A stretch of 64,000 bases of DNA from NCBI GenBank assembly GCA_000708835.1, contig DF237217.1, forward strand, positions 53,188 through 117,187, in the 5' to 3' direction. This DNA is from Klebsormidium nitens (Eukaryota > Plantae > Klebsormidiophyceae). Shown here piece after piece: positions 8,419 through 27,330 of the stretch (position 1 is its first letter; each line of letters begins with the position of its first letter). The translations under genes and the position numbers were made by a program. The notes beneath the pieces are model-generated. The model searched no databases and was not told the DNA's origin. It saw only the letters and a program-made list of their open reading frames with translations.

Positions 8419-8429
8419 TGCAAGGTCGA

Positions 8430-9020
8430 GAGATGACGTTCTTTGGTCCAAGCGTTGGCCCTAAGTGTATAAGCGTCGATAAAACCGTTAAACTAATGGC
8501 ACGAAGGTGTTTGAGTCTCCGAGTTAGGCTCACATACCTTTTTGGGTCGAGCGGCATGCTTGATGACATTAGCAGCCATGCCAACAATATTGCACCATAA
8601 TGAATGGTACAAAGGTGTCCGAGTGTCCGAGTTTCTCACGTACCTTTTTGGGTCGACCATGCTTGATGACGTCAGCAGCCATGCCAGCAATATTGCATCG
8701 TAAAGAATGGTACAAAGGTGTGTCCGAGTTTCTCACGTACCTTTTTGGGTCGACCATGCTTGATGACGTCAGCAGCCATGCCGCCAACGATCCATTGTAA
8801 TTGACGGTGCAAAGGTGTCCGAGCGTCCGAGGTTTTTACGTACCTTTTGAGAGCGACCCCCTTGATGACGTCAGCAGCCATGCCGCCAATGATCGTTGTA
8901 ATCCATGGCGCGAAGGTGTCCGAGCGTCCGAGTTTCTCACATACCTTTTTGAGTCGAGCATGCTTGATGACGTCAGCGTCCATTCCCCCAACCCTTCCAC
9001 AATGATTGACGGCGCGAAGG
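8430..9020 (-). repeat. Family A tandem array 1 (5-6 units, ~100 bp)
   Basis: Repeated GATGACGTCAGCAGCCATG at about 8560, 8665, 8761, 8863 and 8965, alternating with GGTGTCCGAGTGTCCGAGTTT. Confidence 0.9.
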
Positions 9021-10489
9021 TTTAATTTGGCAAGGCTCCTGGCTCGGTTGACGATAAGCCGCAGTTCAATTTGCAACCGTAGGCCTGGCCTATGGCTGTT
9101 AAAAGTAGTGCAACTATGCTACTCGAGTTTTAGACCAAGACTTTGACATGGGGCATCAGCCATTCCATTCCACTCGAAAAACATGGGGTTGTACACGAGG
9201 TTTACAACCATGATGTGTGGTATTGTAGACCTACTAATTTGACATTACGTGCAAATCCAATTGGCTAAAGCAAAGAGTCTTTGAGAGTTGTCAATGTACA
9301 TTGGTACATCCGCAGGGTTGGTAAGGTTCTTCCCAAAGGCATACAAAATAAATACCAAAGTGAGGGTGTTACTACAAGTCACACCTAGGGCATCTAAGCT
9401 TTCTCTAAAAAGGAGGGCAATATGTACATCTCAGAACCTGTGCTCTACCAATTCAAGCAAGGCCAAAAGAAAGACGGTAATTGGCTCTAAGGGCGGGCGC
9501 AGATCGTCAATCATACTCGCACTTGAAGCCTACGTAGCATGAGCTCCGCTGGGATGACCCGTCATAACGGCCGGCTCGCTTCGTTCTCGCCAAACCCTTC
9601 TCTCGCATCTGCCTAGCCAACTCCTCCTTGGCAATCTTGACCCCCGTGAATCTCTGGAACTGCGTCCAGAACTCGTCCTCCCATGTGACGGTCTTGGCAT
9701 TGTCGGGCGTCTCCGGCAGGTCGTGCACGCAGTGCTCCGACTGCAGGAAGATCTGCAGCTTGTCTCCGCGCCCCAGCCATGCCATCGAGGCCGCCTGGAC
9801 GGCCGGCGGATGCGTGCGCAAGACCGTGGGGTCCTCGTACCAGGCCCGACTTCCCTGGACGAGGAACGTAAGGAACTCCTCGCGGACCGCCTGACTCTCC
9901 ATCCGGTCCTTCAACCCAATGTCCACGTGCCTGTGGTTTGGGTTGGTCTCGTCAAACTTGTTCTCGGTCACGTACTCGTTTGGGAAGCGGACCACGATGA
10001 GGCGGCGGTCGATGTTTGGCTGCTTGGCTAGGGTCGGGGGGATTTCGGGGTCGTAGTTGGTCTGGATGAAGGGCGTGTGGGTGAAGCGGAAGGAGACGTT
10101 GTTTTGGTAGAGGAGCCGGGAGGAGACCTTGCCCCCGCCGGTCATCATGAGCACGTTCCCTAGGTCAACGCGCTCGCCCGGGCTCGTCTCGTCCGTCACG
10201 GCCACCCGCTTCCCCTGGAGCTCGGCGAGGTAGCCCGTGGCGGCGCCCTTGGACGGCGGGTGTTGTCCGGGGGCCTTGACCACGGCGTCCTTGGACATGA
10301 CGCCGTAGTAATCGCCCAGCGTGGTCTCCAGCATCTGCTTGCATACTCCTTTGCCATTCCCTGCACGAGAAAGGGGATGAAAAGCACGTGAGCGGGCATC
10401 TGAAATGGAGCTAGAGGATTCGTGATGGACAAACAAATGAAAGCAAAATGGGCGTGATCATTTATCCCAGCACATCATCGGTCAAGGAT

Positions 10490-11235
10490 GGTTGGTGACA
10501 TCATTCTAGAGCAACGAAAGGAAGGCGAGTGCTCAACAAATTGGGACACTCGAAACGTTCGCGCCACCAATCACAGTGGACTATTGGTGGAATGGCTGCT
10601 GACTCATAAAGGGGGTCGACCTCAAAACTTTCGTCCAAAACTCGGACACTTGGACACCTTCGCGCCATCAATTACACTCGAAAAGTGCAGGGAATGGCTG
10701 CTGACGTCATCAAGGGGGTCGACCTCAAAATTTTCGTAAAAAACTCGGACACTTGGACACCTTTGCGCCATCAATTACGAGCGAAAAGTGCAGGGGTTGG
10801 CTGCTAACGTCATAAAGGGGGTCGACCTCAAAACTTTCGTCAAAAAACTCGGACACTTGGACACCTTCGCGCCATCAATTACAAGTAAAAGTGCAGGGAA
10901 CGGCTGCTGACGTCATCAGGGGGGTCGACCTCACAACTTCGGTCAAAACTCGGACACTTGGACACCTTCGCGCCATCAATTACAAGTAGAAAGTGCAGAG
11001 AATGGCTGCTGACGTCATCCAAGGGGGTCGAAATCTATTGTCCTAGGCTGAGCCTAGGACTCGGACCTACAATCTAAAAGGATGCACAGAAGGTGTGTTA
11101 AAAAAGTGGAGACACTGGAGCATCTTCTCACCACCAGTCACAGGGGTTTTTGTGGAAACTTTGCTCACGTCAGCAGAGGGGTCGACCTGGAAAGGGCGTC
11201 CAAGACTCGGATACTAGGACACGTTCGCGCCATCG
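10490..11235 (+). repeat. Family A array 2 (6-7 units) inside intron 11317-10361 of primase-helicase copy 2
   Basis: GCTGCTGACGTCATC-like cores at about 10596, 10698, 10800, 10903 and 11005, each with AAACTCGGACACTTGGACACC. Confidence 0.9.
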
Positions 11236-12479
11236 ATCTCAGTTGACAAACACGGCCAAAAGAAAAAAAGGAGCAGTTGGACGAAGACAATCGGAGCCAA
11301 AGGAGGGAAAGACGTACCGCCGCTTCCGAGTAATAACACAATGATCTCCTCCGAGGTACGTCCGTTGATGGCATAACCCCAGAGCCTCTGCATGAAGTCG
11401 ATCAACGCTCGGTCCCCGTTGAAGATGTCGTCCAGGAAGCCCTTGAGGATGGGCGTCGGGTGATGTAGCCCCTGCAAAGAACGATTTGGACTGCTCGGTC
11501 AAATTCGTATTGGCATCCCTTGAGTCAAAGAACGTCTGCCTCTAACCGGGACTCCTTTGAAAGACGCCGCGCGGACAAGCGCAATTGCAATCAAGCACAA
11601 AGACACGTAAGAAAGCACAAATACGCCGTGAAGCATCAACGCCTTGCCTTGAGATTCAGGCGTTGCGCTGATGCATGTACATACCAGGCAGAAATATGGT
11701 CAGCACTTGAGGAAGGGACGCCAACCTGAACCGAAAAAATCAAGAAATAGAGCGCTAAGCCTCAACACAAAACGTCTGGACTCTTTTTGGTAAGTTGGTC
11801 CCCAAGTGACTTGCACGGATGCTTGTCCTGAGAAGGAGCGATCGCAAGGACAAAAGAGAGACTCAACAAGTATTTCTCTCTCACAATTCTTTTCTGCACC
11901 AGAACTTCGACGATATGCCATCCTGAAAAATTGCATGAAGACGGAAACAAGCCACAACGTGCAAGCAAAACACCTTGTAGTTGATGTCAGCCAGCTTCGT
12001 GCACAGGTACTCCGGCCTGTGGATGTCCAGCTCGCCGGTGCGCAGGTTTATGACCCCGTTTGGACGTTGAGGATGTCTGGATTGGAGTCCAGCTCCCCAA
12101 CCAGATCCAGAGCCATCTCCCCCGTCATGATCGTCAGGGTCGAACTGATCTCGCCAGCGTCGTAGTATCGTCTTACTTTGTCAAGAGCTTTCTTGAGCTC
12201 CATCTTCTCCTCCTCGTCAATAGTTACGCTCAATTGCTCTTTCAATTCGGCTCGAACTCGAGCATACACGGTGCTGAGCTGGTGGACGCAGACGAACTTG
12301 ACCCTCTCGACAGGAGCCTGCTTGAAACGCTTCCCATCCCACATCCACCAAGTCTTCCCGTCGTTCCAGATCCTGCAACTCATAAAAAGGTGTCATTCTT
12401 GGGGCTATAACGCCGTCAATGCCTTCTCAAAAGTCAGCGCTTACAAGCCGTAGCGTTCGACATAACGGAACGTTCAACG

Positions 12480-12970
12480 GCCGGTGGCTGCTGACGTTAT
12501 CCCGAGCTCCTAAACAGAAAACGTTTTGACACATGGACACGGTGCAGGCTCTCTACTACGACGAACTTTAGGTAGAATTGCTGATGGCGTCACCCCGAGC
12601 TCCTGAAGAAAAGAGGTTGGCAGCAATCGAACACTTGGAACGGTACACAGTGCAGGCTCTCAATTTCAGTGAACGTCTGGTGGATTAGATGCTGACGTCA
12701 TCCCAAGCTCACGACCCAAAAAGGTTCGCTGAAACTCGGACACTTGGACACATGACACAGTGCAAACTCTCAGTTATGACGAACCCCAGGTGGAATAGAT
12801 GCTGACTTCATCCCAAACTCACGACCCAAAACGGTTCACTGAAACTCGGACACTTGGACACGGAACACAGTGCATGCTCTCAATAACAACAAACGCCAGG
12901 TGAAAGAGATGCTGGCGCCATCCCGAGCTCCCCACCCAAAAAGGTAAGCTGAAACTCGGACATTGAGACA
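12480..12970 (+). repeat. Family A array 3 (~5 units) inside intron 13146-12373 of primase-helicase copy 2
   Basis: TGCTGACGTCATCCC...GAAACTCGGACACTTGGACA units with ~105-110 bp period. Confidence 0.85.
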
Positions 12971-14827
12971 AAGGAGACAATACGAGACAATGGTTACAAC
13001 AAGGATTGAGCGAGATGCACTCAGACACTTTCTCCCAAAAATGAGCTAGAAGGCAACAGGATGGAAACAATGGCTGCAGCTTTGTTCATATTAAGTTTTC
13101 CAACGTCGCAACGGCTACCACAGAGAAAAGGAGTGGTTGATACCACCTGTGGCACCTCGAGTACATCTGTGCGACGATCCGACTGCCGCCCATGTCACCT
13201 CTGAACGCCCAGTAGTCCACGAATGGCTTCGTCAGCTCCTTGTACACGGTCGGGTCGTCCTCAGAAACTGGGGCTGTCTCGCCCCCCATCATGCTCTCTT
13301 TTGCCGTGAGCTCAACGATCTTGCGCGGCGGGTGAATGTCACAACATTCTGGGCTGTTGCACTTGTAGAGGAGGTTGCGACCCCGCACGAGGACGCAAAA
13401 GTTGTTGGAGCCGCTGTGATTGGCCTCGTACGGACACACGCGTGCGCCATTGACGCGGAACACGTACATGTCGCCCCCAGAAGACCTCTTGAGCTTGTCA
13501 AAGCATGAGTTGGAGTCTCCAGCGGCCGCGAGGCTTTTCTGAATGCGCTCCAGAACAGCTGGCGGAGGGGGCAGCTCGATCTCGTCCACACCGGAGTCGT
13601 CAGTTGGTCGAGCTGGGGGCCCAAATGCCGGTCTGCAAAGAAATACAACGGAGAATGGTAGTTGAAACGGAAGTAGATGTAAGCCTGGCTCGAAATGATG
13701 CTCGTTGCACGGAGCTCATACTGTCAACTTTTGCTTCAAGCAGCTTGCGAATCCTTGTCAACCCATTCGCTCGACCTCAGATTCACGGCAAGAAGCTGAC
13801 TAGCTTGTTTCAATGCAGTTCTTCCTAGAATTAATCAAGTCTGCCAGCGCAGGCCTGTGCACTAGGGTTCAAAAGCAAAAAGTGAATGCACAGAAAATCC
13901 AGATGTAGGGAGCAGTTGTAGCTCTCCGGCTACGATGGCTACCGACCTCCGAAAGGATTCATGCACACCAAAACAGAAGGCTGCTCAGAATGCCACACGG
14001 CAGACCGTGCGTGTGAAAACAAGCATCGACAAGCACTGAATGCCGGATGTTGGCACACAGGCATGGAACCTGACTTCGACCCGTTACAGGCTTCTTGTCC
14101 TACATGAGAAAGTGATGTACCTCGATGCAGCTGGAGGCGCGCCGCTTGCATTGACGATCTCGATCAGCCACTCCGGCATGGCCCGGAGGTTGGAGCGTTC
14201 TGGGGCGATCTCCTGCACCCACTCGTACCGCCGGACCGTGCCGTCCAAGCCCTTGTAGCTGCTGGGGCTCACGAAGAGCATACCCCCCTCGCCGCGCATG
14301 TCGGGCCAACCCTTTTGGCCATTGTAGATCAGACCCGTTCTTCCGGCGCCACTCAGCAAGCCAGCGGCCTTTGTTTGCGACAAAGAGAAGAGAAAGTGTT
14401 TCCCAGGCCGCTTCCCCGACCACTCCCAGGGGGTGTCGTCGGGCAAAGGGCCGTGCTCTGCCAGCAATCGCTCGAAGGCTTCCGCCCCGTTGTCCCGTAT
14501 CGACGTCAAGGGCATAGATGTCGGAGGGCTCCGTCAGGATGGCGAGGCAGGTTTTGCCAAGCCGGACCCCTTCGCGCAAGCAGTTGCCGAGGTCAACCTT
14601 TTGCCAATTGCGCATGAGGCCGGCGGCCGCTTTCTTCTCTTCGCCCTTCTCGTTCAAAAAGAGCCTCATGTTGAACGTCAGTGACGCCACGCCCAGCGAG
14701 TGAAAGTGATGAGCGGCGGCCACGATTGGGGTTGACTCGCGACGGGTCCCCCGCGTCAGCTGGGGTCGGTTCCGGCGGCCCAAGGAAGCATTTGAAATGG
14801 GCTACTAGCTTGGCAAAACCATTTTGG

Positions 14828-15415
14828 GGGATGGCTGCTGACGTCATGGAAGAGGCCCCCTTCAAGAACGTTTATCGGAAACTTGGACACTCAGACACCT
14901 TCGTGCCATCAATCACAGGCGAAAAAGTGCCAAGGATGGCTGTTGACGTCTTGAAAGAGGGCCCCTTCAAGAACGTTTGTCAGAAACTCGGACACTCGGC
15001 CACCTTCGTGCCATCAATCACAGGCAAAAAGTGCCGGGGATGGCTGCTGACGTCATCGAAGAGGGTTCCTTGAAAAACGCGTGTCAAAACTCGATCATTC
15101 GGACACCTTCGTGCCATCAATCACAAACGACAAGTGCGAGGGATGGCTGCTGACGTCATCCAAGAGGCTCCCTTGAAAACGTTTGTCAAAAACTCGGACA
15201 CTTGGACACCTTCGTGCCATCAATTACAGGCGAAAAGCGCCACCGATGGCTGCTGACGTCATCCAAGAGGCTTTCTTCAAAACGTTTGTCAAATACGGAC
15301 ACTCGGACACGTTCGTGCGCATTGATCACAGGCGAAACAATCCGAGGGATAGCTGCTGACGTGATCAAAGAGCCTCCTTCAAAAAACGTTTGTCAAAAAC
15401 TCGGACACTCGAACA
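14828..15415 (+). repeat. Family A array 4 (6 units, ~103-104 bp period)
   Basis: GGATGGCTGCTGACGTCATC...AAAACTCGGACACTTGGACACCTTCGTGCCATCAATCACAGGCG repeated six times with substitutions. Confidence 0.9.
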
Positions 15416-15761
15416 GCCGCTGCCATCTAGACTCAACATTGCAAACCGCTTGGAGCTGTCCGATCCTCAAAAGCTCGAGATTCGCTTCGGCTTTCGTGTA
15501 CATCAATTATTAAGTTGGCGATTGAATGGCTATGTACACGAAGTGTATGGCTATGTACACGAACATTAGCCATCAGTTTTTGCTGAATGCATGGAAATGT
15601 ACACGAATGCATTAAAGATTTTCCTACTCTTCTGCAACTTTGTTGCACTTTGCACGCTTACTTTCTAGGCACGCAACAAGGCCTTAATGCCAGCAGCTAG
15701 GTGCCCAAAAAGCTTTTAACTCCAAGATCGTGGCCGCATGAAATCGGAGGAGGGTGCTTAC

Positions 15762-16360
15762 CCGGTTGTTGGCTCCGCGCGGTTGCGGCACAATCGCGCA
15801 CGATTTGTCGAACGCGTCCTCCAGCCTCCAGTCAGATCCATCGTCCAGCCAGTCCACCTCCTCCGGCTCTGGCGGGAGGTCGTCCGACCAGTCGTCGTCC
15901 TCGGGCAACGGAGGGAGGTCGTCTGGCATGGGGCACTCCATCACGGGCACGTCCCCTTTGACTGGCACGGGGAGGTGCCCGGCGCTCGCAACGTGCCTGC
16001 GACCCGAAGACGGGCTGTCATCCTCGTCCGAGAAGTCGGGCGATGAGTACACCACGCGACGGCGGCGGCGATTTTGGAGGGGCTTGGTCGCCCCATCAGG
16101 CGCGCGCCGCTTGAGCTTCGCCAGGACCTGGGAGAGGCCCTCATTCTCGGAATCCGTCTCCAAAGCGGCGTTCATCTGACCGTACCGCACCACTTCATTC
16201 ATCCTCTTTCCGGGGCGCGTCATCAATCATCGCGCGATCCTCGGGGGTCTCCTCGTCCGACTCCGTCCCGGGGCTCATATTCTGCCCCCTCGATGTTCTC
16301 GCCCTCCCCTTCCGACTCCGTCTCCTGCGCCTCGTCCTCGCTGGAGGGGGGCAGCGCCCG
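15762..16360 (-). pseudogene. Acidic low-complexity exon A1 (frameshifted), paralogue of A2
   Basis: ESEGEGENIEG, ESDEETPEDRAMIDDAP, NEVVRYGQMNAA...DSE, W-rich DDGSDWRLEDAFDKSCAIV. Ends in a phase-0 donor CGG|GTAAGC at 15761. Frame changes near 16265 and 16200. Confidence 0.6.
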
Positions 16361-16489
16361 CCGGTCAATGCTGCTACTCGCCTGCACGGGTATGCATGCG
16401 CTGAAATTAGAAGAATCAATGAAGCAGGTGACCCGCTACTGGTTTCAAAACACGTCTGCGACTGATCGATAGAACCTTGCCTTATAAAT

Positions 16490-16740
16490 GGACCTGCTTT
16501 GTCACGTCAACGACTATCATGGCAAGCTAAGTTGCACACGAAAGGGCTGCCAACACCCCTGTCCGAGTGTCCGAGATCTTGACGTGCCTTTTGGAATCGG
16601 GCCTGCTTTGTGACGTCAGCAAGTTTACATCAGGCAAGATTGCGAGATGGGCTGAGAATACACTGCCAACACCCCTGTCCGAGTGTCCGAGATTCTGACG
16701 TGCCTTCTGAGTCTCGGGCCTACTTTGTGATGTCAGCAAA
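16490..16740 (-). repeat. Family A array 5 (2-3 units, ~120 bp subfamily)
   Basis: CACCCCTGTCCGAGTGTCCGAGAT...CTTTGTGACGTCAGCA, near-identical to array 6. Confidence 0.8.
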
Positions 16741-17205
16741 CATCAAGCCAAGCCAAGCCGTTAACAAACGGGAACAATGACGCCAGATCGTTCTTTCTGT
16801 CGCCGCCACACCAGTTGCCGCCCCCTTTCAGCTGAAGGCCTCAAAGTAGAAGAAAATGTGGTTGGCTCCCCATGAAAGTGTTCCACAACAGAAGTAATCC
16901 TCCTGTGTATACGACACTCACCTCATCTATTGGTGTCGCCTGCTCGCCGCCGTCCTCGCGCGCCCGCGCATCGTCCTCGGGACTCCTCGCGTCCAAGGAC
17001 CGCTTCCGGCCTTGCAATTGTGACGCTGGTACCTGCAAATGGACGGTGCTCATGAGAATGAAGACACGCTTGCGCTGCGAAGCAAGAGAGGGGTCGGTTC
17101 ACATTTCAAGGCTCCCTCCATGGCGTCGACCTGCGGGGGTCTCCGCTCAGTTAACGCGCACTTAGGAGAACGCTTTCGCCGCCGATAGCACCAATTCCTG
17201 AGCTG

Positions 17206-17550
17206 ATGGCTGCCAAAGCAGATCAAGCCTTGTCGGACGAGCAGATCAGAGCTCTATTTCAGATCATCGAAGACGAAGAAGGTGCTTGCGAGTCGGCCAG
17301 GATGTTCGTCGATGTTGTCACGCAGGCAGTCGAGGCCGCTTCCCAACGGTACCTATGCGGCGCTTGGCCAAGAAGGCTCGATTGGCCGGCCGTGTTCCAG
17401 GGCTGGAGAAAGGGACGGGATATCAAGGTGGAGGGCCCTGGCCAGATGTTTGGGGTGCACTTCCTCGCAGGTTATGACACCGAGGGTCGTCTGTCTCTTG
17501 ACTATGCAATCGAAGACTCAGATGAGCTGCAGGCCTTCTACGAGGAGTGA
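17206..17550 (+). CDS. Hypothetical protein (114 aa)
   Basis: ATG-initiated GC-rich ORF with protein-like composition. N-terminus LSDEQIRALF resembles the ORF at 19614. Confidence 0.5.
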   Translation: MAAKADQALSDEQIRALFQIIEDEEGACESARMFVDVVTQAVEAASQRYLCGAWPRRLDWPAVFQGWRKGRDIKVEGPGQMFGVHFLAGYDTEGRLSLDYAIEDSDELQAFYEE

Positions 17551-17959: not shown

Positions 17960-18160
17960 CTGGGCTCGGGCATACTTTGTGACGTCAGCAGACATCCGAG
18001 GCAAGATTGCGAGATGGGGCCAAGAAAACACCGGTTGCCATCACCCCTGTCCGAGTGTCCGAGATTCTGACGTACCTTTTGGGCTCGGGCCTACTTTGTG
18101 ACGTCAGCAGATTCCTTGCCAAGATTGCGGGATGGGGCCAAGAGTACACTGCCATCACCC
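17960..18160 (-). repeat. Family A array 6 (2 units, same subfamily as array 5)
   Basis: CTACTTTGTGACGTCAGCAG...CAAGATTGCG(A/G)GATGGGG...CACCCCTGTCCGAGTGTCCGAG. Confidence 0.8.
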
Positions 18161-18461
18161 TTGCCCAAGGATGGGCGTGTAGGCACTGACCTAGGCAACT
18201 TGTTGGCCGGGTTCAAAAACAGTTCAAATTTCTTCACTAACCTGTGAAACGTTGGTGCCTGCTTTCAGCTGCTGCGAAGTCGCCACTTCCTCTCTGAGCT
18301 AGCGTTGAAAGTCGCGGAAGTAGCTGGGGTCGAAGAGACCATGTAGCCAGGTCCGCGCGGTTCGGGGATCTCATGGATCTGCAAACAAATCGGACACTTG
18401 GTTGGAATTCTTGGCAAAGAGAGGGAGCCTTTTCAGCCGCTCGGCGCTTGATACATATCCT

Positions 18462-21400
18462 TCAAGTTGCCGTGTGGAGTGATCGGGCACAAGTTTCGAC
18501 CAAAGAGTCATCGATTAGGTACCTAAGGAGGCGGGCGACGGCAGTGACTTGCTTCGTTTGCCGACCATTGCAGTGTCGTGCTCGAAAAAGCCACCTCTGC
18601 TTCACTGAAGATGGACACTTCTCGAGCCGATTCTTGGAACACAACAAATCCAACAGGCTTTTAGAGTTCTTGTTGGAGTTCTTATCCGCGCTGCGCCTCC
18701 ATGTGCGCATGCTCGCAAAATATTCTTCATTCAACATTCTATCGACAAACTGAACCTGTGTTTGACAAGGAAGCAGGTTTTGCCCCTCAACTATAGTAAG
18801 GCGTGACAAGAATTCAAACACTTGAACAAAGTCTGCGCCACCAACCACAGTGGATCCTATCGTGGATGGCTGCTGACGTCATCCAAGAGCTCCCGTCTAA
18901 AAATGTGTGACAAGAACTCGGACACTCGGACACCTTCGTGCCATCAATCACGGACAAAAGATGCGGGGGGATGGCTGCTGACGTCATCAAAGAGGCTTTC
19001 TTCAAAAACGTTTGTCAAAAACTCGGACACTCGGACACCTTCCTGCCATCAACCACAGGCAAAAGATGCCGGGTATGGCTGCTGACGTCATCCAAGAGCT
19101 CCCGTTAGAAAAGGTGTGACAAGAACTCGGACACTCGGACACCTTCGTGCCATCAATCACATGCATAAATGCCGGGGATGGCTGCTGACGTCACCAGAAA
19201 CGAGCGCCCAGAAAGTCTGCCAAAAGCTTGGACAACTTGGACAAGAAAAAAGGCTGCTGACGTCATCAAAACCTCCACTTTCCGCACCCAAACAACCAGA
19301 AATAGTACTTTTGGCAATCATGGCAGCGTCATTGCAACCTTGAGGCACGCCACATGTTTGTAGCATGCAGTGTTGTCCGTCGTTGCTGGAACCGTCTGAA
19401 AATTGCTCTCCTGGCGCTCTGACCTCGCAATTTAGAAGATTTTAGCCTTGGTCATGAAGGGGGTGGACTCACCACGACGGGCGCCGGCTCCGCAGCAGCC
19501 GGACGGGGAGCGCTAGCGGGACGCGAGGCGCTGGACGAGGGGCCGGGGTCCTGTAAGGCGAATGCAAAGGCGATGAGCTTAAGAACAGGGAACACAGAGC
19601 TAAGGCAGCTTCGATGGACTGTGGTGCGGTTTCTACCGACGAGCAAGTCAGAAACGTCTTCGCTCTCAGCGCTATGATTGATCAAGAGACTCTGAAGGCG
19701 GCAGCGAGGTTTCCAGACGCAGCAGCTGCTGCGATCGCACACCTCCGCAACAGGGGTGCATGCGACGACCCGAGGGCTTTATCTCGGCCGTGGCTGTTTC
19801 GGTGGTTCATGCACGTGGGGGGATTCTCAAGCTGGTCGAGCGACAATGTCATCGAAATCTTCCAGGAGTTTCTGGATGAAGACTAGGACAAACTCGGGGA
19901 GCTCAAAGGCGCGCTTTTGAGGCGCATCTGCGCCGAGGCAATCCAGGATTGCAAGACACTAACCTCCCTGGCGCCGGCGCTCGGCGGAGTCGGCGGTTGA
20001 GTTGGTCGTACCGTAGAGCAGGCCATGACCTCTGTGCCCCACACCGGGTTCGATTGCTGAAGGAGAAAGGAGTGGACGAAAGTCAAGAAGCGACCTATCA
20101 AAATCTTACAATTACAAACACTCAAAGCAGATTTCCAATTCATGTTTTATTTCTGCTTTTTGAATGGAGTACTAGAATGTCCGGCATGGCTTTTGAGCGG
20201 GCTGACTGACGGTTAGCTGGCTCCTTGTCCAAATTGTCCAAGCTTTTGGCAGACTTTTTTGAAAGCGAATTGTGATGACGTCAGCAATCGTCCACCCCCA
20301 AGTAGAATGCACGTGCAGTCGACAGCATAGACCCTCCCCTTGTCCAAACCGTCCGAACTCTGTGCAAACTTCTCTGGAGTCCATTCTTGATGACGCCATA
20401 CTCAAAAGCTCACACGAAAAAAAGACGTCATCCCCAGCACTTTTTGGCGTGGGCAGCAGCGCGGAAAGAGCGAGCGAACATGGACGCATCTAGGTCAAAG
20501 TCCCTTACCACGGGGGCTTTTGAACGGACGGAATCGCCAGGTTCTCCGCCTAGCTTGAAGGCGGAGGCCTCGGGAGCTGCGGCCGCCTGTGCAGTAGGGG
20601 GAGGGGTGGCGGCGCTGTCACCGTCTACCGCGGCCGTGGTGGAGGCTGGGGGAGATGCGCCCTGCGAAAAGGCCAGGGTGAGAAGAGACGTCAGGCGCAA
20701 CTGTCGGAAGCGACAGGCGACCATATGTCCCTCCCCTTGTCCAAACTGTCCGAGCTCTGGGCAAACTTTTCTGAAGTCCATTCTTGATGACGTCATCAAG
20801 CAAAACGGACATACTCAAAGCCCGCACGTCAGCGCTTTTTGGTGTGGGGAGCGGCGCGGCGCGGGAAAAGCGGACGACCTCAACGGCTTGCCAGCCTGCG
20901 AAGGGACGGACATTTACGCATCCAGGTTGGAGTAAAGCGAAAGGCGAGGATGTGTTGCCAGAGCACTTTTGCGAGTTCCCCCATATGTTCTCAAAACTCT
21001 GATGAAGATGGATGTGGAGGAGAATTGTTGCGTCCAGAAGACCGATCGTGTACATAAGAAAGCAATCGACAAAATACTAGTTGCAAATGTACATCAATCA
21101 AAAAGAACTTGAGGTTGTAGGTGAGATTGTACACGAAGTCTACCACCACTTTTACCACGATTCCACTAGAATCAACAGATGATGACTCCTCCTGATTGGT
21201 GAATGTAAGGACACGTGAGCTATCTTTGAAAAAGGGGGGTGATCTGTACATCTTGTGTGCTCTACTCGACAAAACGAGACCGACGGTGCCTGAAGCAAGA
21301 GAACTTTTTGATGGGGGGCAACATCTATCAAACGCACTCGTGCGCCGCTCATCCAAAGATCGATGGAGACTCACCCGCCCGGCCTTTGGCGGAGGTGGTC

Positions 21401-21941
21401 ACACGATCATACACTTGTCGGTGAACTCGTCCCTGGAGCCCGGGTCCAGCTCCGCCGGGTCGAGGAGGTCGGGCCAGCCGTCGTCGACCAAGTCGAACGA
21501 CCAGCCGTCGTCGTGCTCCAACGACAAGCGGCCGGCATCCTTACTGCTCACTTCGGCCTCCATGTCGGCCGGAGGGGGGTGGTTCTCGTCGGCGCAGGAG
21601 CTCGAGGAAGAGTCCTCCAGAACTCGAAGTCGACCTCGAGGTGCCCGCGGTTTGAACCTCCGCCTCACCATCTCGGCGAGGACTTCCGAGTCGGAAGCGC
21701 CCGCTGCGCGCTGGAGTAGCCCCAATTGGACCACGGGGTTGGGCTCCTTCAGGGGGGCATCGTCCAGCATGGCTCGGTCCCGAGGGGCTTCTTCGTCTGA
21801 AGATTCTTCATCTCTCTGGAACTCTACCCCCTCGATGTCTTCACCCTCTCCTTCCGATTCCGACCTCGCGGGACCGTTCTCCAAGTCGTTGTCCTGCACT
21901 GAAGATTCGGATGTTGATACGTGTTCTTTTCGTCCAGACAT
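18462..21941 (-). CDS. Cryptic multi-exon gene: acidic exon A2, two Pro/Ala-rich exons and a helical exon; possibly a pseudogene
   Basis: ATG at 21941. Exon 21941-21375 (GTGAGT donor, with an in-frame TGA at 21399-21401). Exon 20661-20509 (153 nt, CAG|...|GTAAGG). Exon 19550-19473 (78 nt, CAG|...|GTGAGT). Exon from 18755 (CAG|GTT). All junctions are phase 0. Confidence 0.5.
18840..19270 (+). repeat. Family A array 7 (4-5 units), in the predicted intron 19472-18756
   Basis: GGATGGCTGCTGACGTCATC(C/A)AAGAG...AACTCGGACACTCGGACACCTTCGTGCCATCAATCAC. The last unit switches to CTTGGACAACTTGGACAA. Confidence 0.9.
19614..19886 (+). CDS. Hypothetical protein (90 aa), antisense within a predicted intron
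   Basis: ATG-initiated ORF, STDEQVRNVF N-terminus, W-rich C-terminus. Confidence 0.4.
   Translation: MDCGAVSTDEQVRNVFALSAMIDQETLKAAARFPDAAAAAIAHLRNRGACDDPRALSRPWLFRWFMHVGGFSSWSSDNVIEIFQEFLDED
20215..20835 (-). repeat. Family A array 8 (GGACAA 9-bp-spacing subfamily), flanking exon 20661-20509
   Basis: CCTTGTCCAAA(T/C)(T/C)GTCC(A/G)A(G/A)CT and GATGACGTCA at about 20225-20285, 20340-20395 and 20735-20795. Confidence 0.8.
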
Positions 21942-21974
21942 CTTGGAGAAGGAGCCCGCATCGCATCCCCCTTG

Positions 21975-22720
21975 GATGGTCAGTTGCTGACGTCCTCAAA
22001 ATTGGGCGCTCAGAAAGTCTGCCAAAAGCTCGGACAACTTGGACAACTTGAAGCGACGGCTGCAGACGTCATCAGAAGCGGGCGGTCAGAAAGTCTATGA
22101 AAAGCTCGGACAACTTGGACAAGAGACGGCTGCTGAATGCACTTGTGTTTCACCGCACATACCCCCCTCCCCTTGTCCAAGCTGTCCAAGCTTTTTGATA
22201 CCCTTTTGGGGACACGGAGGCACTGCGACTGCTGACGTCATCAGATTGGCGCTCGCAAAAAAGCCGTGCACAAGCTTGGACACCTCGGACAAGGGAGGCA
22301 TCTGATGTCTGAGGAGGTTGATTGGAATTGAGGACCTCTGTTGTTGACGTCATCAGAAACGGGCGCCCAGAAAGTTTTCAAAAGCTTGGACAATATGGAC
22401 AAGGAACGGCTGATGACGTCATCCAGATTGGGCGTCCAAAAGTCTTCGTTTGAAGAGCTCGGACAACTTGAACAAAAGAGAGAGGTCTGCGCCATTGGCA
22501 ACCACAACTGAATTCTACCTTGGATGGTCGAAAGCTGCTAACGTTATCAAAACTGGGCACCAAAAAAGTCTTCAAAGAGCTTGGACAACTTGGACAAGAG
22601 GGTCTTCGATCAACTACAGCTCCATTCTACCTCGGATGGTCCGTTGCTGATGTCATCCTCGAGGACTGGCCACCAAAAATGTCCTCCAAGGGCTTCGACA
22701 ACTTGGACAAGCGGGAGTCC
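21975..22720 (+). repeat. Family A array 9 (GGACAA subfamily, ~6 units, one inverted GGACA pair)
   Basis: TGACGTCATCAGA...AAAGCT(C/T)GGACAACTTGGACAA. Inverted CCTTGTCCAAGCTGTCCAAGC near 22170-22192. Confidence 0.85.
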
Positions 22721-23099
22721 GCATTGAACAAGAATCACAGCAGACATGTCGGTGGGAGCTAACCTCCGAAAATGGATTTCCGGAGATGCTGGGATGCCCG
22801 GGCACAAAGAAGCCCTCTTGAAAGTACACCGCATCACCGGTCCGTCGTCCCTTGTCGCTCGCCGCCCGCACGGCCTCGATCTCCTCTGACGTGGGCATTT
22901 TGGTATAGGCGGAACTCGTTGGCTCGTACGTTCTCTCTTCGAGCTGCAATAGGGAGCACGTCTCAGTCCGGGCAATGGCATTGACCAGTCGGTTCAGAAA
23001 AGCGCACGCGTTGCTGCCTGACAAGCAAAGCAGCGGGGCATGGATTGGCTCAAATTCATGTGGGCGCATGCCGCAACTGCTGACCAAACAACGCAACAA
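22653..23099 (-). CDS. Hypothetical protein or exon
   Basis: Open frame with protein-like core (AFLNRLVNAIARTETCSLLQLEERTYEP...). The 3' end runs into repeat array 9. Confidence 0.3.
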   Translation of the reverse strand: MLRCLVSSCGMRPHEFEPIHAPLLCLSGSNACAFLNRLVNAIARTETCSLLQLEERTYEPTSSAYTKMPTSEEIEAVRAASDKGRRTGDAVYFQEGFFVPGHPSISGNPFSEVSSHRHVCCDSCSMRTPACPSCRSPWRTFLVASPRG

Positions 23100-23343
23100 G
23101 CCTCGTGACGACGTCAGCAGAGTCAGAAAAGGACTGCTCAGGCAGGTGAGAGCGGACCAAACCCAAACGATTCAATGAAGGAGACCGCATCACAAGTTGA
23201 GCGTCTCAAGCGAACACCAACGCTGTCCAAATACTTCAAGTTCTTGGCAAAATTTCCCCGATCTGCTGTGATGACGTCGGCAAGTCTAAGCTGCTGCTGG
23301 GGCAAATACACATTTGACCCTTGGAAGGTCTACCGAGCCGGAA

Positions 23344-25606
23344 TCAGCGTGTCCAAATCAAATCGGCCAAAGAGCTATCCTCCATCCTCGAAAACTCCAT
23401 GTTTAAATCTTCTCCTCCACTCTCCAAAGGCGTTGGGCGCAACCGCGACAGAGGAGAGCCTGAGGCTTGCTCCGCACTGCCTGGCAAACCGTCTGATGAG
23501 GGCCCCCGGTTTTTTTCGACGCCACCGATAAACAGGAGGGTCTCTGCAGATGTTGGAGAAGAGGACCGATAGAGGACAGTGCAATGCTCGATCCTTCAGT
23601 GGCTTCAAAAATGGACGGACAAGCATTCACTGCATTCCGCGAGGGGGCAGGCACTGCTGAGGGGGGCCGGGGAAGAGGGGAGCGCACGCGCTTTCAGTCA
23701 CTTACCGAGAAGCGCATGGCTCATGGGCTCCGTGGAGGGCGGGGGGGATTTGAAGGTCGGCTCATCGAACACTGCAAAAGGCGATGAGCGGCGCCAGTCA
23801 TATGCCAGCCCGTCGCCAAAAGAAGATGGCCAGCATGCGGAAGGATGCTGCAGGGGCCAACAAGCTTAAGGACCGATGCAGACAGTTGCAGAGAGGACTT
23901 CACGTGCTGAGAGGACTTCACGTGCTGCTTGCAAATAGGACCCGCATCAGGAGGTACGGGTTGAATTGGAGCTTATTGGAGCCCTCAGGAAAGGAACGAG
24001 GATGGCAGCGGCAAGATCCCCCCACCTGGCGAGGAGCAAGCGCGGAGCGCTGGCGCTTCTGCAGAAGAGCTTTCCTCGTCCATCTTCCGCAGCTCATCCT
24101 CGAGCCTCTCCAACTCCGCTTCCACGCGACGCCACTCCCGCTCTCGAACCCATGCTGCAAAAGGCAATAAAAGCTCTGACAACTTGGACAAGGAGGGGGA
24201 TCTGTGCAATCGATTACAACAACGTTCTACCCCGGATGGTCAGCTGCTGACGTCATCCAGACTGGACTTCAGAAAACCGTTCTCGAAAACCCTTGGACAA
24301 CTTGGACAAAGTGCTCTGTGCAATCGATCACAGCTGCATTCCGCCCGGGATGGTCAGCTGATGACGTCATCCAGACTGGGCTTCAGAAAATTTCTCGAAA
24401 ACCCTTGGACAACTTGGACAAAGCGGGTCTCCGCAATCGATCACAGCTGCATTCCGCCCGGGATGGTCAGCTGATGACGTCATCAAGACTGGATCCCAGA
24501 AAAGTTCTCGAAAAGGCTTGGACAACTTGGACAAGCTGAAATCGATCACAGCTGAACTCAGGCCGGGATGGTCAGCTGATGACGTCATCAAGACTGGATC
24601 CCAGAAAAGTTATCGAAAACGTTTGGACAACTTGGACAAACTGCGGGGCGCTGAAAGGCTTCTGGTGCATCGTAATTGGCCAGTAGATGCGAAGATGGCG
24701 CAGTGCTGCAACAGATCAAATAACCCACGGGCCTCAGTGACGCCGCTCGAGATTGTGACATGCCTTACCTGCGCGGTCTTTGTCGATGCGGAAGCTTCCA
24801 AACGAGTGGTCATGATCTTTGCACGAGTACTCGACTTGCCCCCCGCCCTTGCTTCCTCGAAGGCCCCACACTGCGGTTGCGCCGCACACGTGGCAACAAA
24901 GACTGTGCGGGTCTGCAAGGAGGCGAAGAGAAAGGGGTCGGACCTGGTCCGTTTCGAAGGGATCAGAGCCCTAGAAAGTCCAGGCGAAACTCGGTACTGC
25001 TGGCTTCCTTGGGGCAAAGAACACCCTAGCAACATCATGCAGCAGAATCTTGCGAGAGTGTTCTCCGAAAATCTTGGTACCCCGCGGCGACGGCCAGCTC
25101 ACCCGTCTTTTCGCCTATGGTTGACAATACGTGACAAGATTTACCCCTTAGTTACTCTAGAGAGAAACAAGAAGTCTTCCAACTTCCGAGCAGGTTTTCC
25201 AGATTCATTGGAGTGGAGCCGAGCAAATCGAGGGACATATTGGATCAAAAACAGCCGTTCTCTCACCTGCTTTCGTCTCCAGCTGCTCGATGCCTCTCCG
25301 CCGGCGCGGAGATCTCGGGCTTCCGCTCGCGACCTTAGCTCTACGGGCCCTGCGCGCAGCGCGCACGGTGCCCCGCTGCTTGAGCCCCTCAAGGTGCGCC
25401 GCAGCTGTTGATGCGACGACCCGCCCGAAGCCCTCCAGCAGCTCTGAGTCCGGAACTCCAATCAGCCCCTCCAAACCGCTCACGGCGGCCTCGAATGCCC
25501 CATCCCAGTTGGACCGCGTCCAGAGGAGCCCCGCCGGCCCACACTGCTCTCTCGCCAGCCCGCACACGCGGCCCGCGTTCCTTCGAAAGACGCGCTTCCC
25601 TTGCAC
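23344..25606 (-). CDS. Cryptic multi-exon gene G3 (coiled-coil exon, 2A-like motif in the last exon); 5' end uncertain
   Basis: Exons ...-25267, 24154-24026, 23771-23706 and 23543-23344. Donors G|GTGAGA, G|GTGGGG and G|GTAAGT, and acceptors TTTTGCAG, TTTTGCAG and TCTGCAG, are all phase 1. Spliced product: IEQLETKA-AWVREREWRRVEAELERLEDELRKMDEE...-VFDEPTF...-ETLLFIGGVEKNRGP. Confidence 0.5.
24170..24645 (+). repeat. Family A array 10 (4-5 highly similar units) inside predicted intron 25266-24155
   Basis: TGACGTCA at 24248, 24362, 24475 and 24580 (periods 114, 113, 105), each followed by CTTGGACAACTTGGACAA. Confidence 0.9.
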
Positions 25607-25683
25607 GGACTTCCGCTTAAGCGCGCTCCCAACGAGGATCTTGACGTCCGAGAGGGAGAGCGGCCGCCCACATCGGGAGGGGA

Positions 25684-25740
25684 GCGCTGGGCTGCATCAG
25701 GAGTGCGCTGGGCTGCATCAGGGGTGCGCTGGGCCGGCCC
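25684..25740. repeat. 21-bp tandem repeat (about 2.5-3 copies)
   Basis: G(A/T)GCGCTGGGCTGCATCAGG(A/G) repeated. Reads AQRTPDA on the minus strand. Confidence 0.8.
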
Positions 25741-25864
25741 AGGTGCTTCCATCGTGGGCGCCATGTGCGGATCCTGCGGGAGGAGATAATTGCGAGGTGA
25801 ATGGGCGATCGCAGCGAACCGGCGCCATGCCTTGAGAGCCCCAAGAACTCGTGTGACTAATTGC

Positions 25865-26230
25865 ACACACACTGTCCGAATGTCCGAGATTTGGACACCC
25901 TTTTCAAAGGAAAAGCTCTTGGTGATGTCAGCGTCCATTCCTACAAGGATGCGCTGCAACTGATCGAGCACCCCCCTGTCCGAGTGTCCGACTTTGGATA
26001 CACATCTCAAAATTGAACCTCTTTGATGACGTCAGCGCCCATCCCTCCAAAAATGCGCTGAGACTGACTGCGCGCACCCTATCCGAGTGCCTGACTTTTC
26101 TAAGATGATTTTCGGGATGGTCTTTTTCAGGTGACCTCAGCAGCTACAGCGTGTCCAAGTGTCCGAGGTATTGACCAACCTTTTTAGCTTGAACTTGTGT
26201 CATGACGTCAGCAGCCATCCGAGACAGTGA
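25865..26230 (-). repeat. Family A array 11 (degenerate, 3-4 units)
   Basis: CTGTCCGA(A/G)TGTCCGA and GATGACGTCAGC motifs. Confidence 0.75.
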
Positions 26231-26259
26231 GCTCGGATGAGATCCGAGCTCTGACAACA

Positions 26260-27330
26260 CGTTTTGGAATGCGCGCACCTCGATGGAAGGCGGACCAGGC
26301 TGCTGCAGCTGTTTGTCGACATCCACTGGGGCGGCGGTGATGCCGCCCCCCAGAGGACTTTTTCGAGGCCTTGGAGAGGGGGCGTCTGGGTAGAGCGCGC
26401 TTGCGTCTCCTCCTAGTTCAGCCAGCCGTCGATCCTGCATACACAATGCCCAATTCAGCTTACTTGGTCATATCTGGTGAAGTGATCGAGTGCATTTCTT
26501 TGAACCTTGTTGCCCGGCATGGCTGATGACATCATCGCCAGGAGCTCGGACACTCGGACAGCTTTGCACCATCAAGCACAGGGAACATTGCCCGGCATGG
26601 CTGCTGATGTCATCAAGAAAGTTCGATCTCGAAAGGTGTGACAAAATCTCGGACACTCGGACACGGGCCAGAAAACGTTCACACCGTCATTGCAGCGCAT
26701 CCTGGGTGGGATGGCTATTGCTGACGTCACAAAAGAGCCACTCCAAAAACTGAACGGCCAAGTGGACATTTGGCCAAGATTCAAGCCGTTGGTCACAGGA
26801 GGTGACCCCCCCTCGGATGGCTGCTGTTGTCGTCACAAGGGCACCCCATCAGAAACTGAATGGCAACGCAGCGAGCCTTTCCAAAGCACCCCTCTTGGAC
26901 CAGGGCACTTAAGGTGTGGTCAGAGTTTTTAACACTCGGACAGAGTCAAGCTATCAATTATGGCAGATCATGCCCGGCATGGCTGGTGACGTCACACTGA
27001 GAGTGAGATTGCAAAAGGTTGTGTAAAACCTCGGACACTCCAACATGGTCCCCGAAGGCGATCCTCAACCAACCTGTGACGCTTGATCCGGGGTTGTTCC
27101 CTTTACGCACAAGCAATCTGCACATATGAGCTCTCAAAATCTGAATGCGCGCACCTGGATGGAGGTTAAAGCAGGCTGCTGCAGCTGGTCGTCTACATCC
27201 ATCGAAGTAGCGGGGATGCCACGTGCCGCAAGGCTTGGGGGGGGGCTTGTGAGCGAGCCTCTTCGTGCACTCCCCACCAGCTCTTTGCTGGTAGACAGGG
27301 GGTAAGGGTTAGAGATGTCCTGCAAGGAAG
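26260..27330 (-). repeat. Diverged duplicated segment (~26260-26400 and ~27140-27280) flanking array 12
   Basis: GAATGCGCGCACCT(C/G)GATGGA...CAGGCTGCTGCAGCTG...ACATCCA in both copies. Minus frames read VDVDKQLQQPGPPSIEVRAF and MDVDDQLQQPALTSIQVRAF. Confidence 0.7.
26510..27045 (+). repeat. Family A array 12 (degenerate, ~5 units)
   Basis: CCCGGCATGGCTG(C/G)TGA(C/T)GTCA and CTCGGACACTCGGACA motifs. Confidence 0.75.

Follow-up and report, generated by a model that had tools for sequence, protein, structure and literature searches.

Head-to-tail copies of promoter-like modules are found in rDNA intergenic-spacer promoters and nuclear-DNA-virus enhancers, where they run in the direction of the downstream gene and change quickly in copy number. 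Iteron-type origins are compact, occupying a single locus or two, and include an AT-rich unwinding element; their initiators often read DNA through a winged helix. Known as-1-type promoter elements consist of one or two half-sites. Baculovirus homologous regions (hrs) are dispersed repeat arrays that carry CRE/TRE bZIP sites and function both as enhancers and as origins (PMC13513840, citing Landais et al. 2006). The TGACGTCA palindrome is a representative and preferred site of TGA-type bZIPs (PMC9360754), TGA factors of the bZIP family have been reported in Klebsormidium (PMC6508501), and NCLDV core genes have been reported in K. flaccidum (PMC5294986).

We analyzed the last 64 kb of the Klebsormidium nitens scaffold DF237217.1 (the window). 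Searching all 64 kb with nhmmer and seven natural units as query resolved 17 repeat blocks (4651 bp total), all within 8489-27051 and with zero matches elsewhere in the window. Merging blocks separated by less than ~340 bp gave 12-13 arrays (Table 1). Array strand was defined as the direction from palindrome to GGACA pair, and the block orientations from left to right were - + + + + - - + - - + + + - - + +. These results agree with the sequence-only reading, which had described about 12 arrays in both orientations, confined to this island. TRF reported arrays with periods of 97-113 bp at 8495-8991, 10589-11031, 12627-12970, 14828-15415, 18864-19193, 24178-24640, and 25872-26067. Because the period varies over that range between arrays, the earlier suggestion of ~10 helical turns per unit holds for some arrays but not as a general rule. 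The palindrome occurred 36 times in the window vs 0.9 expected, a count reached in 0/100 shuffles, with 33/36 copies in 8667-26994. GGACA-N3-GGACA (≤1 mismatch) also had 36 copies vs 3.8 expected, 31 of them inside 8616-26776 on both strands. Both motifs were in register (each ≤1 mismatch) in 36 units; including single-motif and degenerate units raised the total to ~50-58, making the previous estimate of 45-55 a fair one.

Table 1 Repeat arrays and genes of the element, in window coordinates
Feature	Position	Strand	Remarks
KDZ transposase-like gene piece	224..1775	+	
Type-A primase-helicase	2866..5769	-	one intact ORF, 967 codons; Prim-Pol, D5_N, DUF5906 matches; no array inside or adjoining
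Small conserved ORF	5805-6218	+	no Pfam match
Small conserved ORF	6264-7043	-	no Pfam match
Small conserved ORF	7387-7977	-	no Pfam match
Small conserved ORF	7993-8460	-	no Pfam match
Array 1	8489..8991	-	~5 units, period 97
Type-B primase-helicase gene	9510..14801	-	PrimPol, D5_N, SF3 helicase pieces; multi-exon
Arrays 2, 3	blocks 10486-11075, 11150-11251	+	~7 units, period 103
Array 4	12487..12983	+	~4-5 units, period 110
Array 5	14822..15429	+	~6 units, period 103
ORF-X	15687..16226	-	conserved open frame upstream of type-B gene
Array 6	16552..16750	-	2 units
Array 7	18048..18126	-	one unit
Array 8	18861..19243	+	~4 units, period 105; additional palindrome at 19258
Arrays 9, 10	blocks 20219-20398, 20735-20801	-	variant subfamily
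ORF-X'	21402..21995	-	distant ORF-X paralogue; nearest is P0031 of locus L148
Arrays 11, 12	blocks 21978-22143, 22403-22718	+	variant subfamily
Array 13	24170..24650	+	~4 units, period 113; variant subfamily
Arrays 14, 15	blocks 25850-26056, 26145-26224	-	
Arrays 16, 17	blocks 26514-26688, 26970-27051	+	right end of repeat-bearing island

Each ~100-bp unit had four conserved blocks, whose order and spacing were fixed: ~10 nt preceding the palindrome, a perfect TGACGTCA palindrome (8-12 bp in the unit), an A-run and then GT, and a direct repeat of 8-9 bp in tandem that contains both GGACA cores. In a variant subfamily the direct-repeat half-sites were each one base longer (9-bp vs 8-bp period). 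The palindrome (≤1 mismatch) started 43-47 nt ahead of the GGACA-pair start in 29/31 cases, with a gap of 35-39 nt between the two, and it is this spacing within the unit, rather than the array period, that is conserved. Between-array identity was 0.89 for the palindrome and 0.82 for the direct-repeat block compared with 0.33-0.45 for spacers and flanks, bearing out the claim that two motifs and their ~35-nt spacing are kept while the intervening sequence drifts. The pre-palindrome block (0.62) and the A-run plus GT (0.63) played no part in unit selection. Anchoring units on the direct repeat removed ascertainment bias from the motif-conservation test: of the 33 direct-repeat pairs that matched exactly within the island, 31 had a palindrome (≤1 mismatch) at the expected place. 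Per-position conservation of the aligned units showed excess identity in the motif blocks and not uniform divergence, and the same block-wise pattern was present among 93 units from six loci. Units were more alike within arrays (identity 0.53-0.68 vs 0.33-0.45 in spacers between arrays), indicating local amplification. No conserved RNA structure, Rfam family, or tRNA was found. Since the motif blocks were conserved while the spacers were saturated, both in the window and in its paralogous and orthologous copies, the block-wise pattern argues for predicted protein-binding sites, as the sequence-only reading had proposed in rejecting neutral satellite DNA. It points to promoter/enhancer-like sequences rather than junk.

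The arrays resemble baculovirus hrs in being dispersed over one element in both orientations, with ~70-100-bp units, a palindrome combined with CRE/TRE-type bZIP sites, and higher identity within than between arrays. Sequence homology between the two is absent. Unlike in hrs, the Klebsormidium palindrome of 8-12 bp is the bZIP site itself and there is no 30-bp imperfect palindrome; there is no IE1 homologue, and the second conserved motif is the tandem GGACA repeat. A further difference is that the Klebsormidium arrays belong to an endogenous nuclear element in a streptophyte alga, where they occupy introns and 5' flanks. Their density is much higher, at 25% of 18.6 kb, and their orientation is biased with respect to transcription. 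The exact TGACGTCA is shared with TGA/CREB-type (C-box/CRE; as-1-like) sites, and the earlier call of a bZIP-type site matches both the representative TGA site (PMC9360754) and the occurrence of the family in Klebsormidium (PMC6508501). Unlike as-1-type elements, the Klebsormidium site recurs in ~50 copies at ~100-bp intervals and is always coupled to a second motif 35-39 nt away.

The arrays are part of a multi-copy, virus-derived gene cluster of K. nitens comprising a KDZ transposase-like gene, an intact NCLDV-type primase-helicase (type A), small ORFs, and a second, intron-bearing primase-helicase (type B). The KDZ transposase-like gene was syntenic with type A in the window and in loci L002 and L145. 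Type A had the Prim-Pol, D5_N, and SF3-helicase regions of NCLDV D5/C962R-type primase-helicases, and its nearest solved relative was 'putative primase C962R'. A type-A relative with 39% identity lay on a contig with genes for capping enzyme, VLTF3, A22 resolvase, and RFC. Over the 22.6 kb of this contig (L003, the closest true giant-virus-like one) that were examined, no array was present. Unlike it, the Klebsormidium copies are multi-copy and linked to the KDZ transposase-like gene, with one type having gained introns and host-like codon composition. Compared exon by exon, the type-B pieces were colinear with type A (27-50% identical) and had 0.67-0.81 G+C at third codon positions. Purifying selection acts on the type-B helicase exon (dN/dS 0.15-0.16; dS 0.8 vs L002 and 0.42 vs L004). 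Arrays were common to paralogues at these dS values, so the motifs persisted while the spacers saturated.

Within the minus-strand type-B gene, arrays 2 and 3 occupied a canonical GT-AG intron (~10366-11317) and array 4 another (~12374-13145), all antisense. The position of one array-bearing intron recurred in the array-free paralogues L147 (~200 bp) and L145 (~273 bp) and in L002 (~405 bp, 2-3 units); a second was common to the window and L002 (~569 bp and ~3 units in L002). Unit number at shared intron positions ranged from 0 to ~7 among paralogues, and L002 and L148 had units in one intron whose counterpart in the window has none. Array 13 is probably intronic and antisense as well, being flanked by minus-strand coding pieces conserved in L148. 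Array 5 was flanked by ORF-X and the first of the conserved PrimPol coding pieces, antisense to both, in a stretch where public gene models are split on intron status. The anticipated co-location of arrays with primase-helicase genes was found in several copies among the loci compared, but primase-helicase loci L145, L146, and L147 of the K. nitens genome lacked arrays. Copies of the unit unlinked to these elements may also exist elsewhere in the genome.

Every intronic block in the window, L002, L004, and L148 was antisense to its gene, whereas upstream arrays pointed towards a conserved ORF in the window, L002, L004, L144, L148, L149, and L151. These counts are not independent because the loci share ancestry, and they represent ~3-4 contexts for genes and 3-4 for introns. 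In the window, array 1 lay between the type-B 3' end and the ORF at 7993-8460 and pointed to that ORF, and array 6 was upstream of ORF-X and directed towards it. Arrays 11 and 12 were the exception, abutting the ORF-X' 5' end yet pointing away. The last well-formed unit ended 87-197 nt before the ATG at three loci, while arrays in L144 and L149 were >400 nt from it. An assembly gap separates the two arrays of L144. Membership in a multi-copy element, intron location, variation of unit number among paralogues, and this orientation pattern are new relative to the sequence-only reading.

We tentatively favor a reading, possible though somewhat short of probable, in which the arrays are directional promoter/enhancer modules recruiting host TGA/CREB-type bZIPs and a second factor on the direct repeat. 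They would be tandemly multiplied cis-regulatory modules of a giant-virus-derived primase-helicase/KDZ element, multi-copy and presumably resident in the Klebsormidium nuclear genome. The TGACGTCA palindrome would be occupied by bZIP dimers and the direct repeat by a putative host- or element-encoded factor, the two motifs together forming a directional RNA polymerase II promoter/enhancer module. Arrays ahead of genes would drive or boost those genes; intronic arrays would be tolerated solely in antisense and may serve as enhancers or antisense promoters. Unequal exchange would change unit number quickly, with selection retaining the binding blocks. In favor of this reading are the block-wise constraint, the age, the intronic location, and the direction of the arrays, together with the TGA-type palindrome and the precedent of hrs. 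As a further precedent, a triple-palindrome scan turned up true tandem arrays, with 93-96-bp units bearing this palindrome, at three or more places on one 148-kb uncultivated viral contig. Such modules would be like the head-to-tail repeats of rDNA spacers and viral enhancers, but unlike those, which lie upstream of one gene class, the Klebsormidium module is also found antisense in introns and adjoins several unrelated ORFs. Counting against promoter/enhancer modules are the 25% array content of the island, unusually dense for enhancers, the array-free type-A gene and several array-free small ORFs, the direction of arrays 11-12, and the L144 and L149 distances.

Replication origins, in which the primase-helicase (via a winged helix at its C-terminus) or some other protein of the element would bind the GGACA iterons, with palindrome and A-run as auxiliary or unwinding elements, and in which the many arrays would be multiple origins, are less likely than promoter/enhancer modules, and on the whole unlikely. 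The element does encode two primase-helicases, its units place short direct repeats alongside a palindrome and an A-run, and hrs are origins as well as enhancers (PMC13513840). Tandem short direct repeats beside primase-helicase genes also recall phage P4 ori/crr, plasmid, and small-DNA-virus Rep origins, and in two relatives the ORF-X domain is an N-terminal fusion to a Herpes_ori_bp-type helicase. The winged helix expected at the helicase C-terminus was, in type A, a plausible but weakly supported fold (model pLDDT 73.5; Foldseek matches to RFX DNA-binding domains with E-values of 0.06-0.09). Unlike iteron origins, however, the arrays form 17 blocks over 18.6 kb, several in introns of a selected nuclear gene, they have 51% G+C with no AT-rich unwinding region, and their orientation tracks transcription, a feature not needed for an origin. 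Together with the array-free primase-helicase loci and giant-virus-like contig, this speaks against the earlier proposal of origins for the element's own primase-helicase.

Transposase binding sites can take the form of subterminal repeats, as in CACTA-type transposons. We consider it quite unlikely that the arrays are selfish repeats of this sort, either as KDZ transposase sites or as a small mobile or expanding minisatellite that colonizes the element's non-coding DNA. The syntenic KDZ gene and the differences in unit number and presence/absence in the same introns of paralogues would suit such repeats, and the consistent antisense placement in introns could be the usual bias of insertions carrying transcription signals. 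However, no terminal inverted repeats or common terminal sequences were apparent on reading the array edges, the arrays are dispersed across the island without concentration at its ends, and four blocks in fixed order and spacing exceed the needs of a transposase site. Saturation of the between-array spacers also indicates no recent spread.

Tandem repeats attract silencing in plants, and intronic arrays oriented antisense to type B throughout, with units resembling directional promoter modules, might feed host silencing (siRNA, DNA methylation) that keeps element genes down. This role as a source of antisense or small RNA is very unlikely, as neither an ORF nor a conserved structure follows the intronic arrays and CpG is not depleted (observed/expected of 0.88 in arrays and 0.92 in the island vs 0.78 in host flank). 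Purifying selection on type-B exons likewise indicates a gene that is not simply silenced and decaying.

A neutral minisatellite, with motif conservation a by-product of recent amplification or gene conversion, would account for the likeness of units within arrays but appears highly improbable and already contradicted by the block-wise pattern, since either process would homogenize entire units, whereas between arrays and loci the four blocks alone are conserved, in fixed order and spacing.

The repeat arrays noticed in the sequence-only reading were recovered by several methods. TRF found arrays with periods of 97–113 bp, the palindrome TGACGTCA occurred in 36 exact copies in the window against 0.9 expected (33 of them within the island), and the downstream direct repeat, the GGACA pair, occurred 36 times against 3.8 expected. 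An nhmmer search using seven natural units as the query returned 17 blocks totaling 4651 bp, all located at 8489–27051, which resolved into 12–13 arrays with both orientations represented across the 18.6 kb of the island. Both motifs were in register in 36 units, and the count rose to ~58 when degenerate units were included. The palindrome was 8 bp long (12 bp in array 13) and the G+C content of the arrays was 51%. In a self-comparison of the island, the inter-array segments (0.7–1.8 kb) were unique, the arrays matched one another only, and no higher-order repeat of several kb was seen. The period of about 10 helical turns noted earlier for array 4 did not generalize: the period varied over the 97–113 bp range, so the conserved quantity is the spacing within the unit and not helical phasing between units. 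Two short tandem duplications of ~106–111 bp lay outside the island (27459–27816 and 33423–33624) and were unrelated to the unit, with no nhmmer match and no palindrome.

We aligned 47 units and indexed the column shares on the natural unit window:15121-15230:+. Four blocks stood out: ~10 nt ahead of the palindrome, the palindrome with the two bases that follow it, a run of 5–6 A residues then GT ~25 nt downstream of the palindrome, and a 16-nt block made up of a GGACA-containing 8-mer duplicated in tandem. Identity between arrays was 0.62, 0.89, 0.63, and 0.82 for these blocks, respectively, and 0.33–0.45, near saturation, for the spacers and flanks. The excess conservation of the two motifs predicted from the sequence was thus present, and the non-uniform divergence along the unit bears out the earlier argument against a neutral satellite. 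Since the units had originally been picked by their palindrome, we repeated the conservation test anchored on the direct repeat. A palindrome with at most one mismatch lay upstream of 31 of the 33 exact direct-repeat pairs in the island, starting 43–47 nt before the pair in 29 of those 31 cases, and the single exact pair outside the island had no palindrome. The same block pattern was found between 93 units from six loci. Within the orthologous intron shared by the window and the Klebsormidium-like contig L004, identity was 85–93% throughout, so constraint on motif and spacer is inseparable there.

Block-wise conservation with saturated spacers is the pattern that selection on protein-binding sites would produce. 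Amplification or gene conversion would homogenize whole units. In arrays 9–13 each half-site of the direct repeat was one base longer, giving a period of 9 bp instead of 8 bp; either duplication renews the pair or its reader can accommodate both spacings. Among the 19 one-mismatch palindrome variants in the window arrays, 6 carried one of the two CpG-deamination changes (24 variants are possible), a mild excess, though CpG was not depleted overall and the arrays lacked that sign of methylation decay.

The window agreed at every base with locus L001 of scaffold DF237217.1 and corresponds to 53188–117187, the final 64 kb of that scaffold. The host belongs to the charophyte (streptophyte) green algae. 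NCLDV core genes were reported earlier in K. flaccidum (PMC5294986). Right of ~27 kb, the window contained ordinary-looking multi-exon host genes, such as a metallo-beta-lactamase-fold gene at 49–51 kb. To the left, an intact primase-helicase ORF of 967 codons (type A, 2866–5769, minus strand) was 99% identical to KFL_002680110 of K. nitens, had at least 14 K. nitens paralogues, and matched Prim-Pol, D5_N, and DUF5906 in Pfam; its only solved relatives were chains named ‘putative primase C962R’. Compared with a copy on a JGI contig (L005 1349–4306), type A had 88.6% protein identity, 91.8% DNA identity, and a dN/dS of 0.28, and thus likewise appears to be under selection and not in decay. A relative with 39% identity was located on a 62-kb metagenome contig (L003; JGI 3300060285, Ga0590115_0002208) from the same samples as the Klebsormidium-like contigs. 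This contig had a gene set of giant-virus type, including a capping enzyme, RFC, YqaJ, VLTF3, an A22-type resolvase, and AEP_C962R.

A second, divergent copy of the primase-helicase gene, type B, ran on the minus strand from ~14801 to 9510, with PrimPol, D5_N, and helicase pieces colinear in three successive inter-array segments. Its third-position G+C was host-like (0.67–0.81, vs 0.57 in type A). In Pfam searches of 28 island and flank ORFs, the only matches were weak ones to D5_N and DUF5906 within type-B pieces. Homologue searches returned one protein for ORF 21402–21995 and four unnamed proteins for ORF 7993–8418. The conserved ORF 6264–7043 (minus strand) had G+C of 0.31/0.26/0.35 at codon positions 1–3 in an element otherwise at 50–55%, and in the public model P0010 a homologous piece serves as the N-terminal exon for a primase-helicase gene.

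The element was ordered as a KDZ (Kyakuja-Dileera-Zisupton) transposase-like gene, type A, four small ORFs, an array, type B with its arrays, ORF-X (15687–16226, minus strand), and further arrays. We sampled Klebsormidium-like metagenome assemblies for this element through protein look-ups. The layout recurred on L002, another scaffold of K. nitens, and among the Klebsormidium-like contigs from two JGI samples (L004, L148, L149–152); the island thus belongs to an element present in multiple copies and is no isolated case. The KDZ transposase-like gene adjoined type A in three loci (see table), and the element in its entirety may be a large DNA transposon with viral replication genes aboard. 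Our literature search found no paper describing this element, and a paper on K. nitens cis-elements contained nothing relevant to the arrays.

Positions of element features, and the direction of arrays near genes, in the window and the compared loci. Direction is that of the unit, from palindrome to direct repeat.
Feature	Locus	Position	Strand	Observation
KDZ transposase-like gene	window	224–1775	+	beside type A
KDZ transposase-like gene	L002	14671–19118		beside type A
KDZ transposase-like gene	L145	15057–20580		beside type A
Intron with arrays 2 and 3	window	~11317 to 10366	-	GT donor right after conserved codons, CAG acceptor right before next piece
Intron with array 4	window	~13145 to 12374	-	canonical; junctions common to L002
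Array 1	window			points to ORF 7993–8460
Array 6	window			points to ORF-X
Array	L002	45–250		points to ORF-X homologue
Array	L002	7051–7579		points to next gene
Array	L004	3333–4246		points to ORF 7993 homologue
Array	L148	9610–9917		points to P0031
Array	L148	15512–15702		points to next gene
Array	L151	9807–10086		points to ORF 7993 homologue
Array	L149	8496–8766		points to ORF 7993 homologue
Two arrays	L144			point to one gene each; assembly gap between the two arrays

Several arrays lay inside introns of type B. At the junction occupied by arrays 2 and 3 in the window, the intron was ~405 bp with 2–3 units in L002, and ~200 bp and ~273 bp in the paralogues L147 and L145, both without units. 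The L002 counterpart of the array 4 intron was ~569 bp with ~3 units, and a third type-B intron had units in L002 and L148 and was empty in the window. Unit number in these introns changes freely. The array-free intron of L145 (6244–6516) had its own ~70-bp tandem duplication with no recognizable kinship to the unit. We compared the type-B exons singly, without joining them. For the helicase exon, dN/dS was 0.15 between the window and L002 (dS 0.81), 0.16 between the window and L004 (dS 0.42), and 0.15 between L002 and L004 (dS 0.80), and the L004 exon contained one in-frame stop. This exon is under purifying selection, and the arrays have therefore resided for a long time in introns of a gene that has stayed functional. 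Some public gene models unite ORF-X with type B in a single gene and others do not, and array 5 thus lies in either an intron or a spacer.

The direction of the units followed their position relative to genes. All intronic blocks of type B ran antisense to the gene; these were arrays 2, 3, and 4 of the window (and array 5 if intronic) and the intronic blocks of L002, L004, and L148. Every array upstream of a conserved ORF at the loci in the table was aimed at that ORF, with the exception of arrays 11–12, which were aimed away from ORF-X' (21402–21995, minus strand), a distant paralogue of ORF-X. Between the end of the last well-formed direct repeat and the ATG that follows lay 197 nt in the window, 153 nt in L004, and 87 nt in L151; by eye, this distance was ~100–150 nt in L148 and L002, and in L144 and L149 the arrays were >400 nt from the ATG. 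Because these loci share an ancestral layout, the orientation cases are not independent. The pattern fits transcription-signal modules, sense before genes and antisense only within introns, and fits an origin of replication poorly. Two of these loci had other features beside their arrays: in L144, a separate C-rich minisatellite of ~12–13 bp (6600–6810) directly adjoined one of the palindrome arrays, followed by an N-gap at 7131–7150, and in L151, Copia-type retrotransposon pieces (7076–9404; Retrotran_gag_2, zf-CCHC, Pol_BBD) lay immediately upstream of the array.

The most likely reading, by inference, is that the arrays act as directional promoter/enhancer modules belonging to a multi-copy, giant-virus-derived Klebsormidium element. 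Each module would combine a host bZIP site with a second site for another factor. TGA-type bZIPs have this palindrome as their representative site (PMC9360754), and Klebsormidium possesses TGA factors (PMC6508501). Among known systems, the nearest is that of the baculovirus homologous regions, dispersed arrays whose ~70-bp units carry palindromes together with CRE/TRE bZIP sites and which serve as enhancers and origins (PMC13513840). Like those regions, the arrays are a single repeat family in dispersed blocks of both orientations (17 in 18.6 kb). However, the two have no homology, and the ~30-bp imperfect palindrome of the baculovirus repeats contrasts with one of 8 bp here (12 bp in array 13), with no longer dyad in the unit alignments; for these reasons we do not file the arrays as homologous regions. 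Pfam found no transactivator homologue in the ORFs of the element. The arrays probably work like the enhancer side of the baculovirus regions.

If this promoter/enhancer reading is true, a virus-derived element has wired its genes to the TGA/CREB-type bZIP system of its host, one of the earliest-branching streptophyte algae, through two-motif modules. The strategy would be the same as that of insect baculoviruses, having arisen independently in a nuclear, intron-bearing setting. The ~50 units in the window and >90 across six loci would then be a natural set for defining the target of the second factor, the arrays would be a marker for tracing the element family in Klebsormidium genomes, and type B would provide a case of repeat arrays persisting in one direction only in the introns of a selected gene. 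Should the reading be false, the arrays would still be a clear example of selection on short blocks inside a fast-evolving tandem repeat.

The iteron-type origins of replication proposed in the sequence-only reading are a possible but weaker explanation. The tandem 8–9-bp direct repeat with its two GGACA cores, well conserved between arrays, could bind an initiator. When the C-terminal 159 residues of type A were modeled (pLDDT 73.5), Foldseek gave weak matches to RFX winged-helix domains (E 0.06–0.09, probability 0.98–0.99, target-normalized TM-score 0.6–0.69). Another weak match was to the C-terminal part of a solved primase from this family (E 0.02–0.09 including the RFX matches), and the matches are compatible with a putative DNA-reading domain. 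An N-terminal domain related to ORF-X, whose own structure model was poor (pLDDT 57.5, pTM 0.20), was fused to Herpes_ori_bp-type helicases in two relatives, and Herpes_ori_bp-type SF2 helicase genes lay beside one element copy (L144 1–3905; proteins P0040 and P0049). However, origins would be expected at one or a few dedicated intergenic loci and not in 17 blocks, several of them lying in GT-AG introns of a gene that purifying selection maintains. Nor was an AT-rich unwinding element present next to the repeats, where the only A-run is that of the unit and half of the sequence is G+C. The other primase-helicase loci L145–L147 had no arrays, nor did the giant-virus-like contig over the 22.6 kb inspected.

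A bolder combination, which we consider improbable, would unite a KDZ-type transposon and a giant-virus replication module in one element that still functions, with arrays that, like baculovirus homologous regions, act at once as host-bZIP-dependent promoter/enhancers and as iteron origins read by its own primase-helicases, and with the antisense intronic arrays as a built-in brake on type B. If true, it would be the first control system of the homologous-region type known from a streptophyte and from a cellular genome. A reading of the array edges showed no shared termini, terminal inverted repeats, or target-site duplications of the kind that insertions of MITE-like or other small transposons may leave. 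We dropped a structured RNA because RNAalifold predicted 0 conserved pairs (21 units, palindrome-to-direct-repeat direction only), with no matches to Rfam at the gathering score or to tRNAs with ARAGORN in the window, and rejected a spliced-leader gene array, Pol III A/B boxes, and snoRNA boxes, for which the candidate ‘exon’ or box regions were not the conserved parts.

Scanning IMG/VR for the bipartite pattern gave 17 single matches, a chance-like result. A stricter scan for three exact palindromes at 94–116-bp spacing gave nine stretches on seven contigs. One of these, the uncultivated viral contig IMGVR_UViG_3300020048_000031 (148 kb), contained at least three separate true tandem arrays with 93–96-bp units carrying the palindrome. 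In its tandem-repeat tables, which cover three loci (L154, L158, and L161), the units were AT-rich and the GGACA pair was absent from them. Arrays of ~100 bp that bear the palindrome are thereby shown to recur in large viral genomes.
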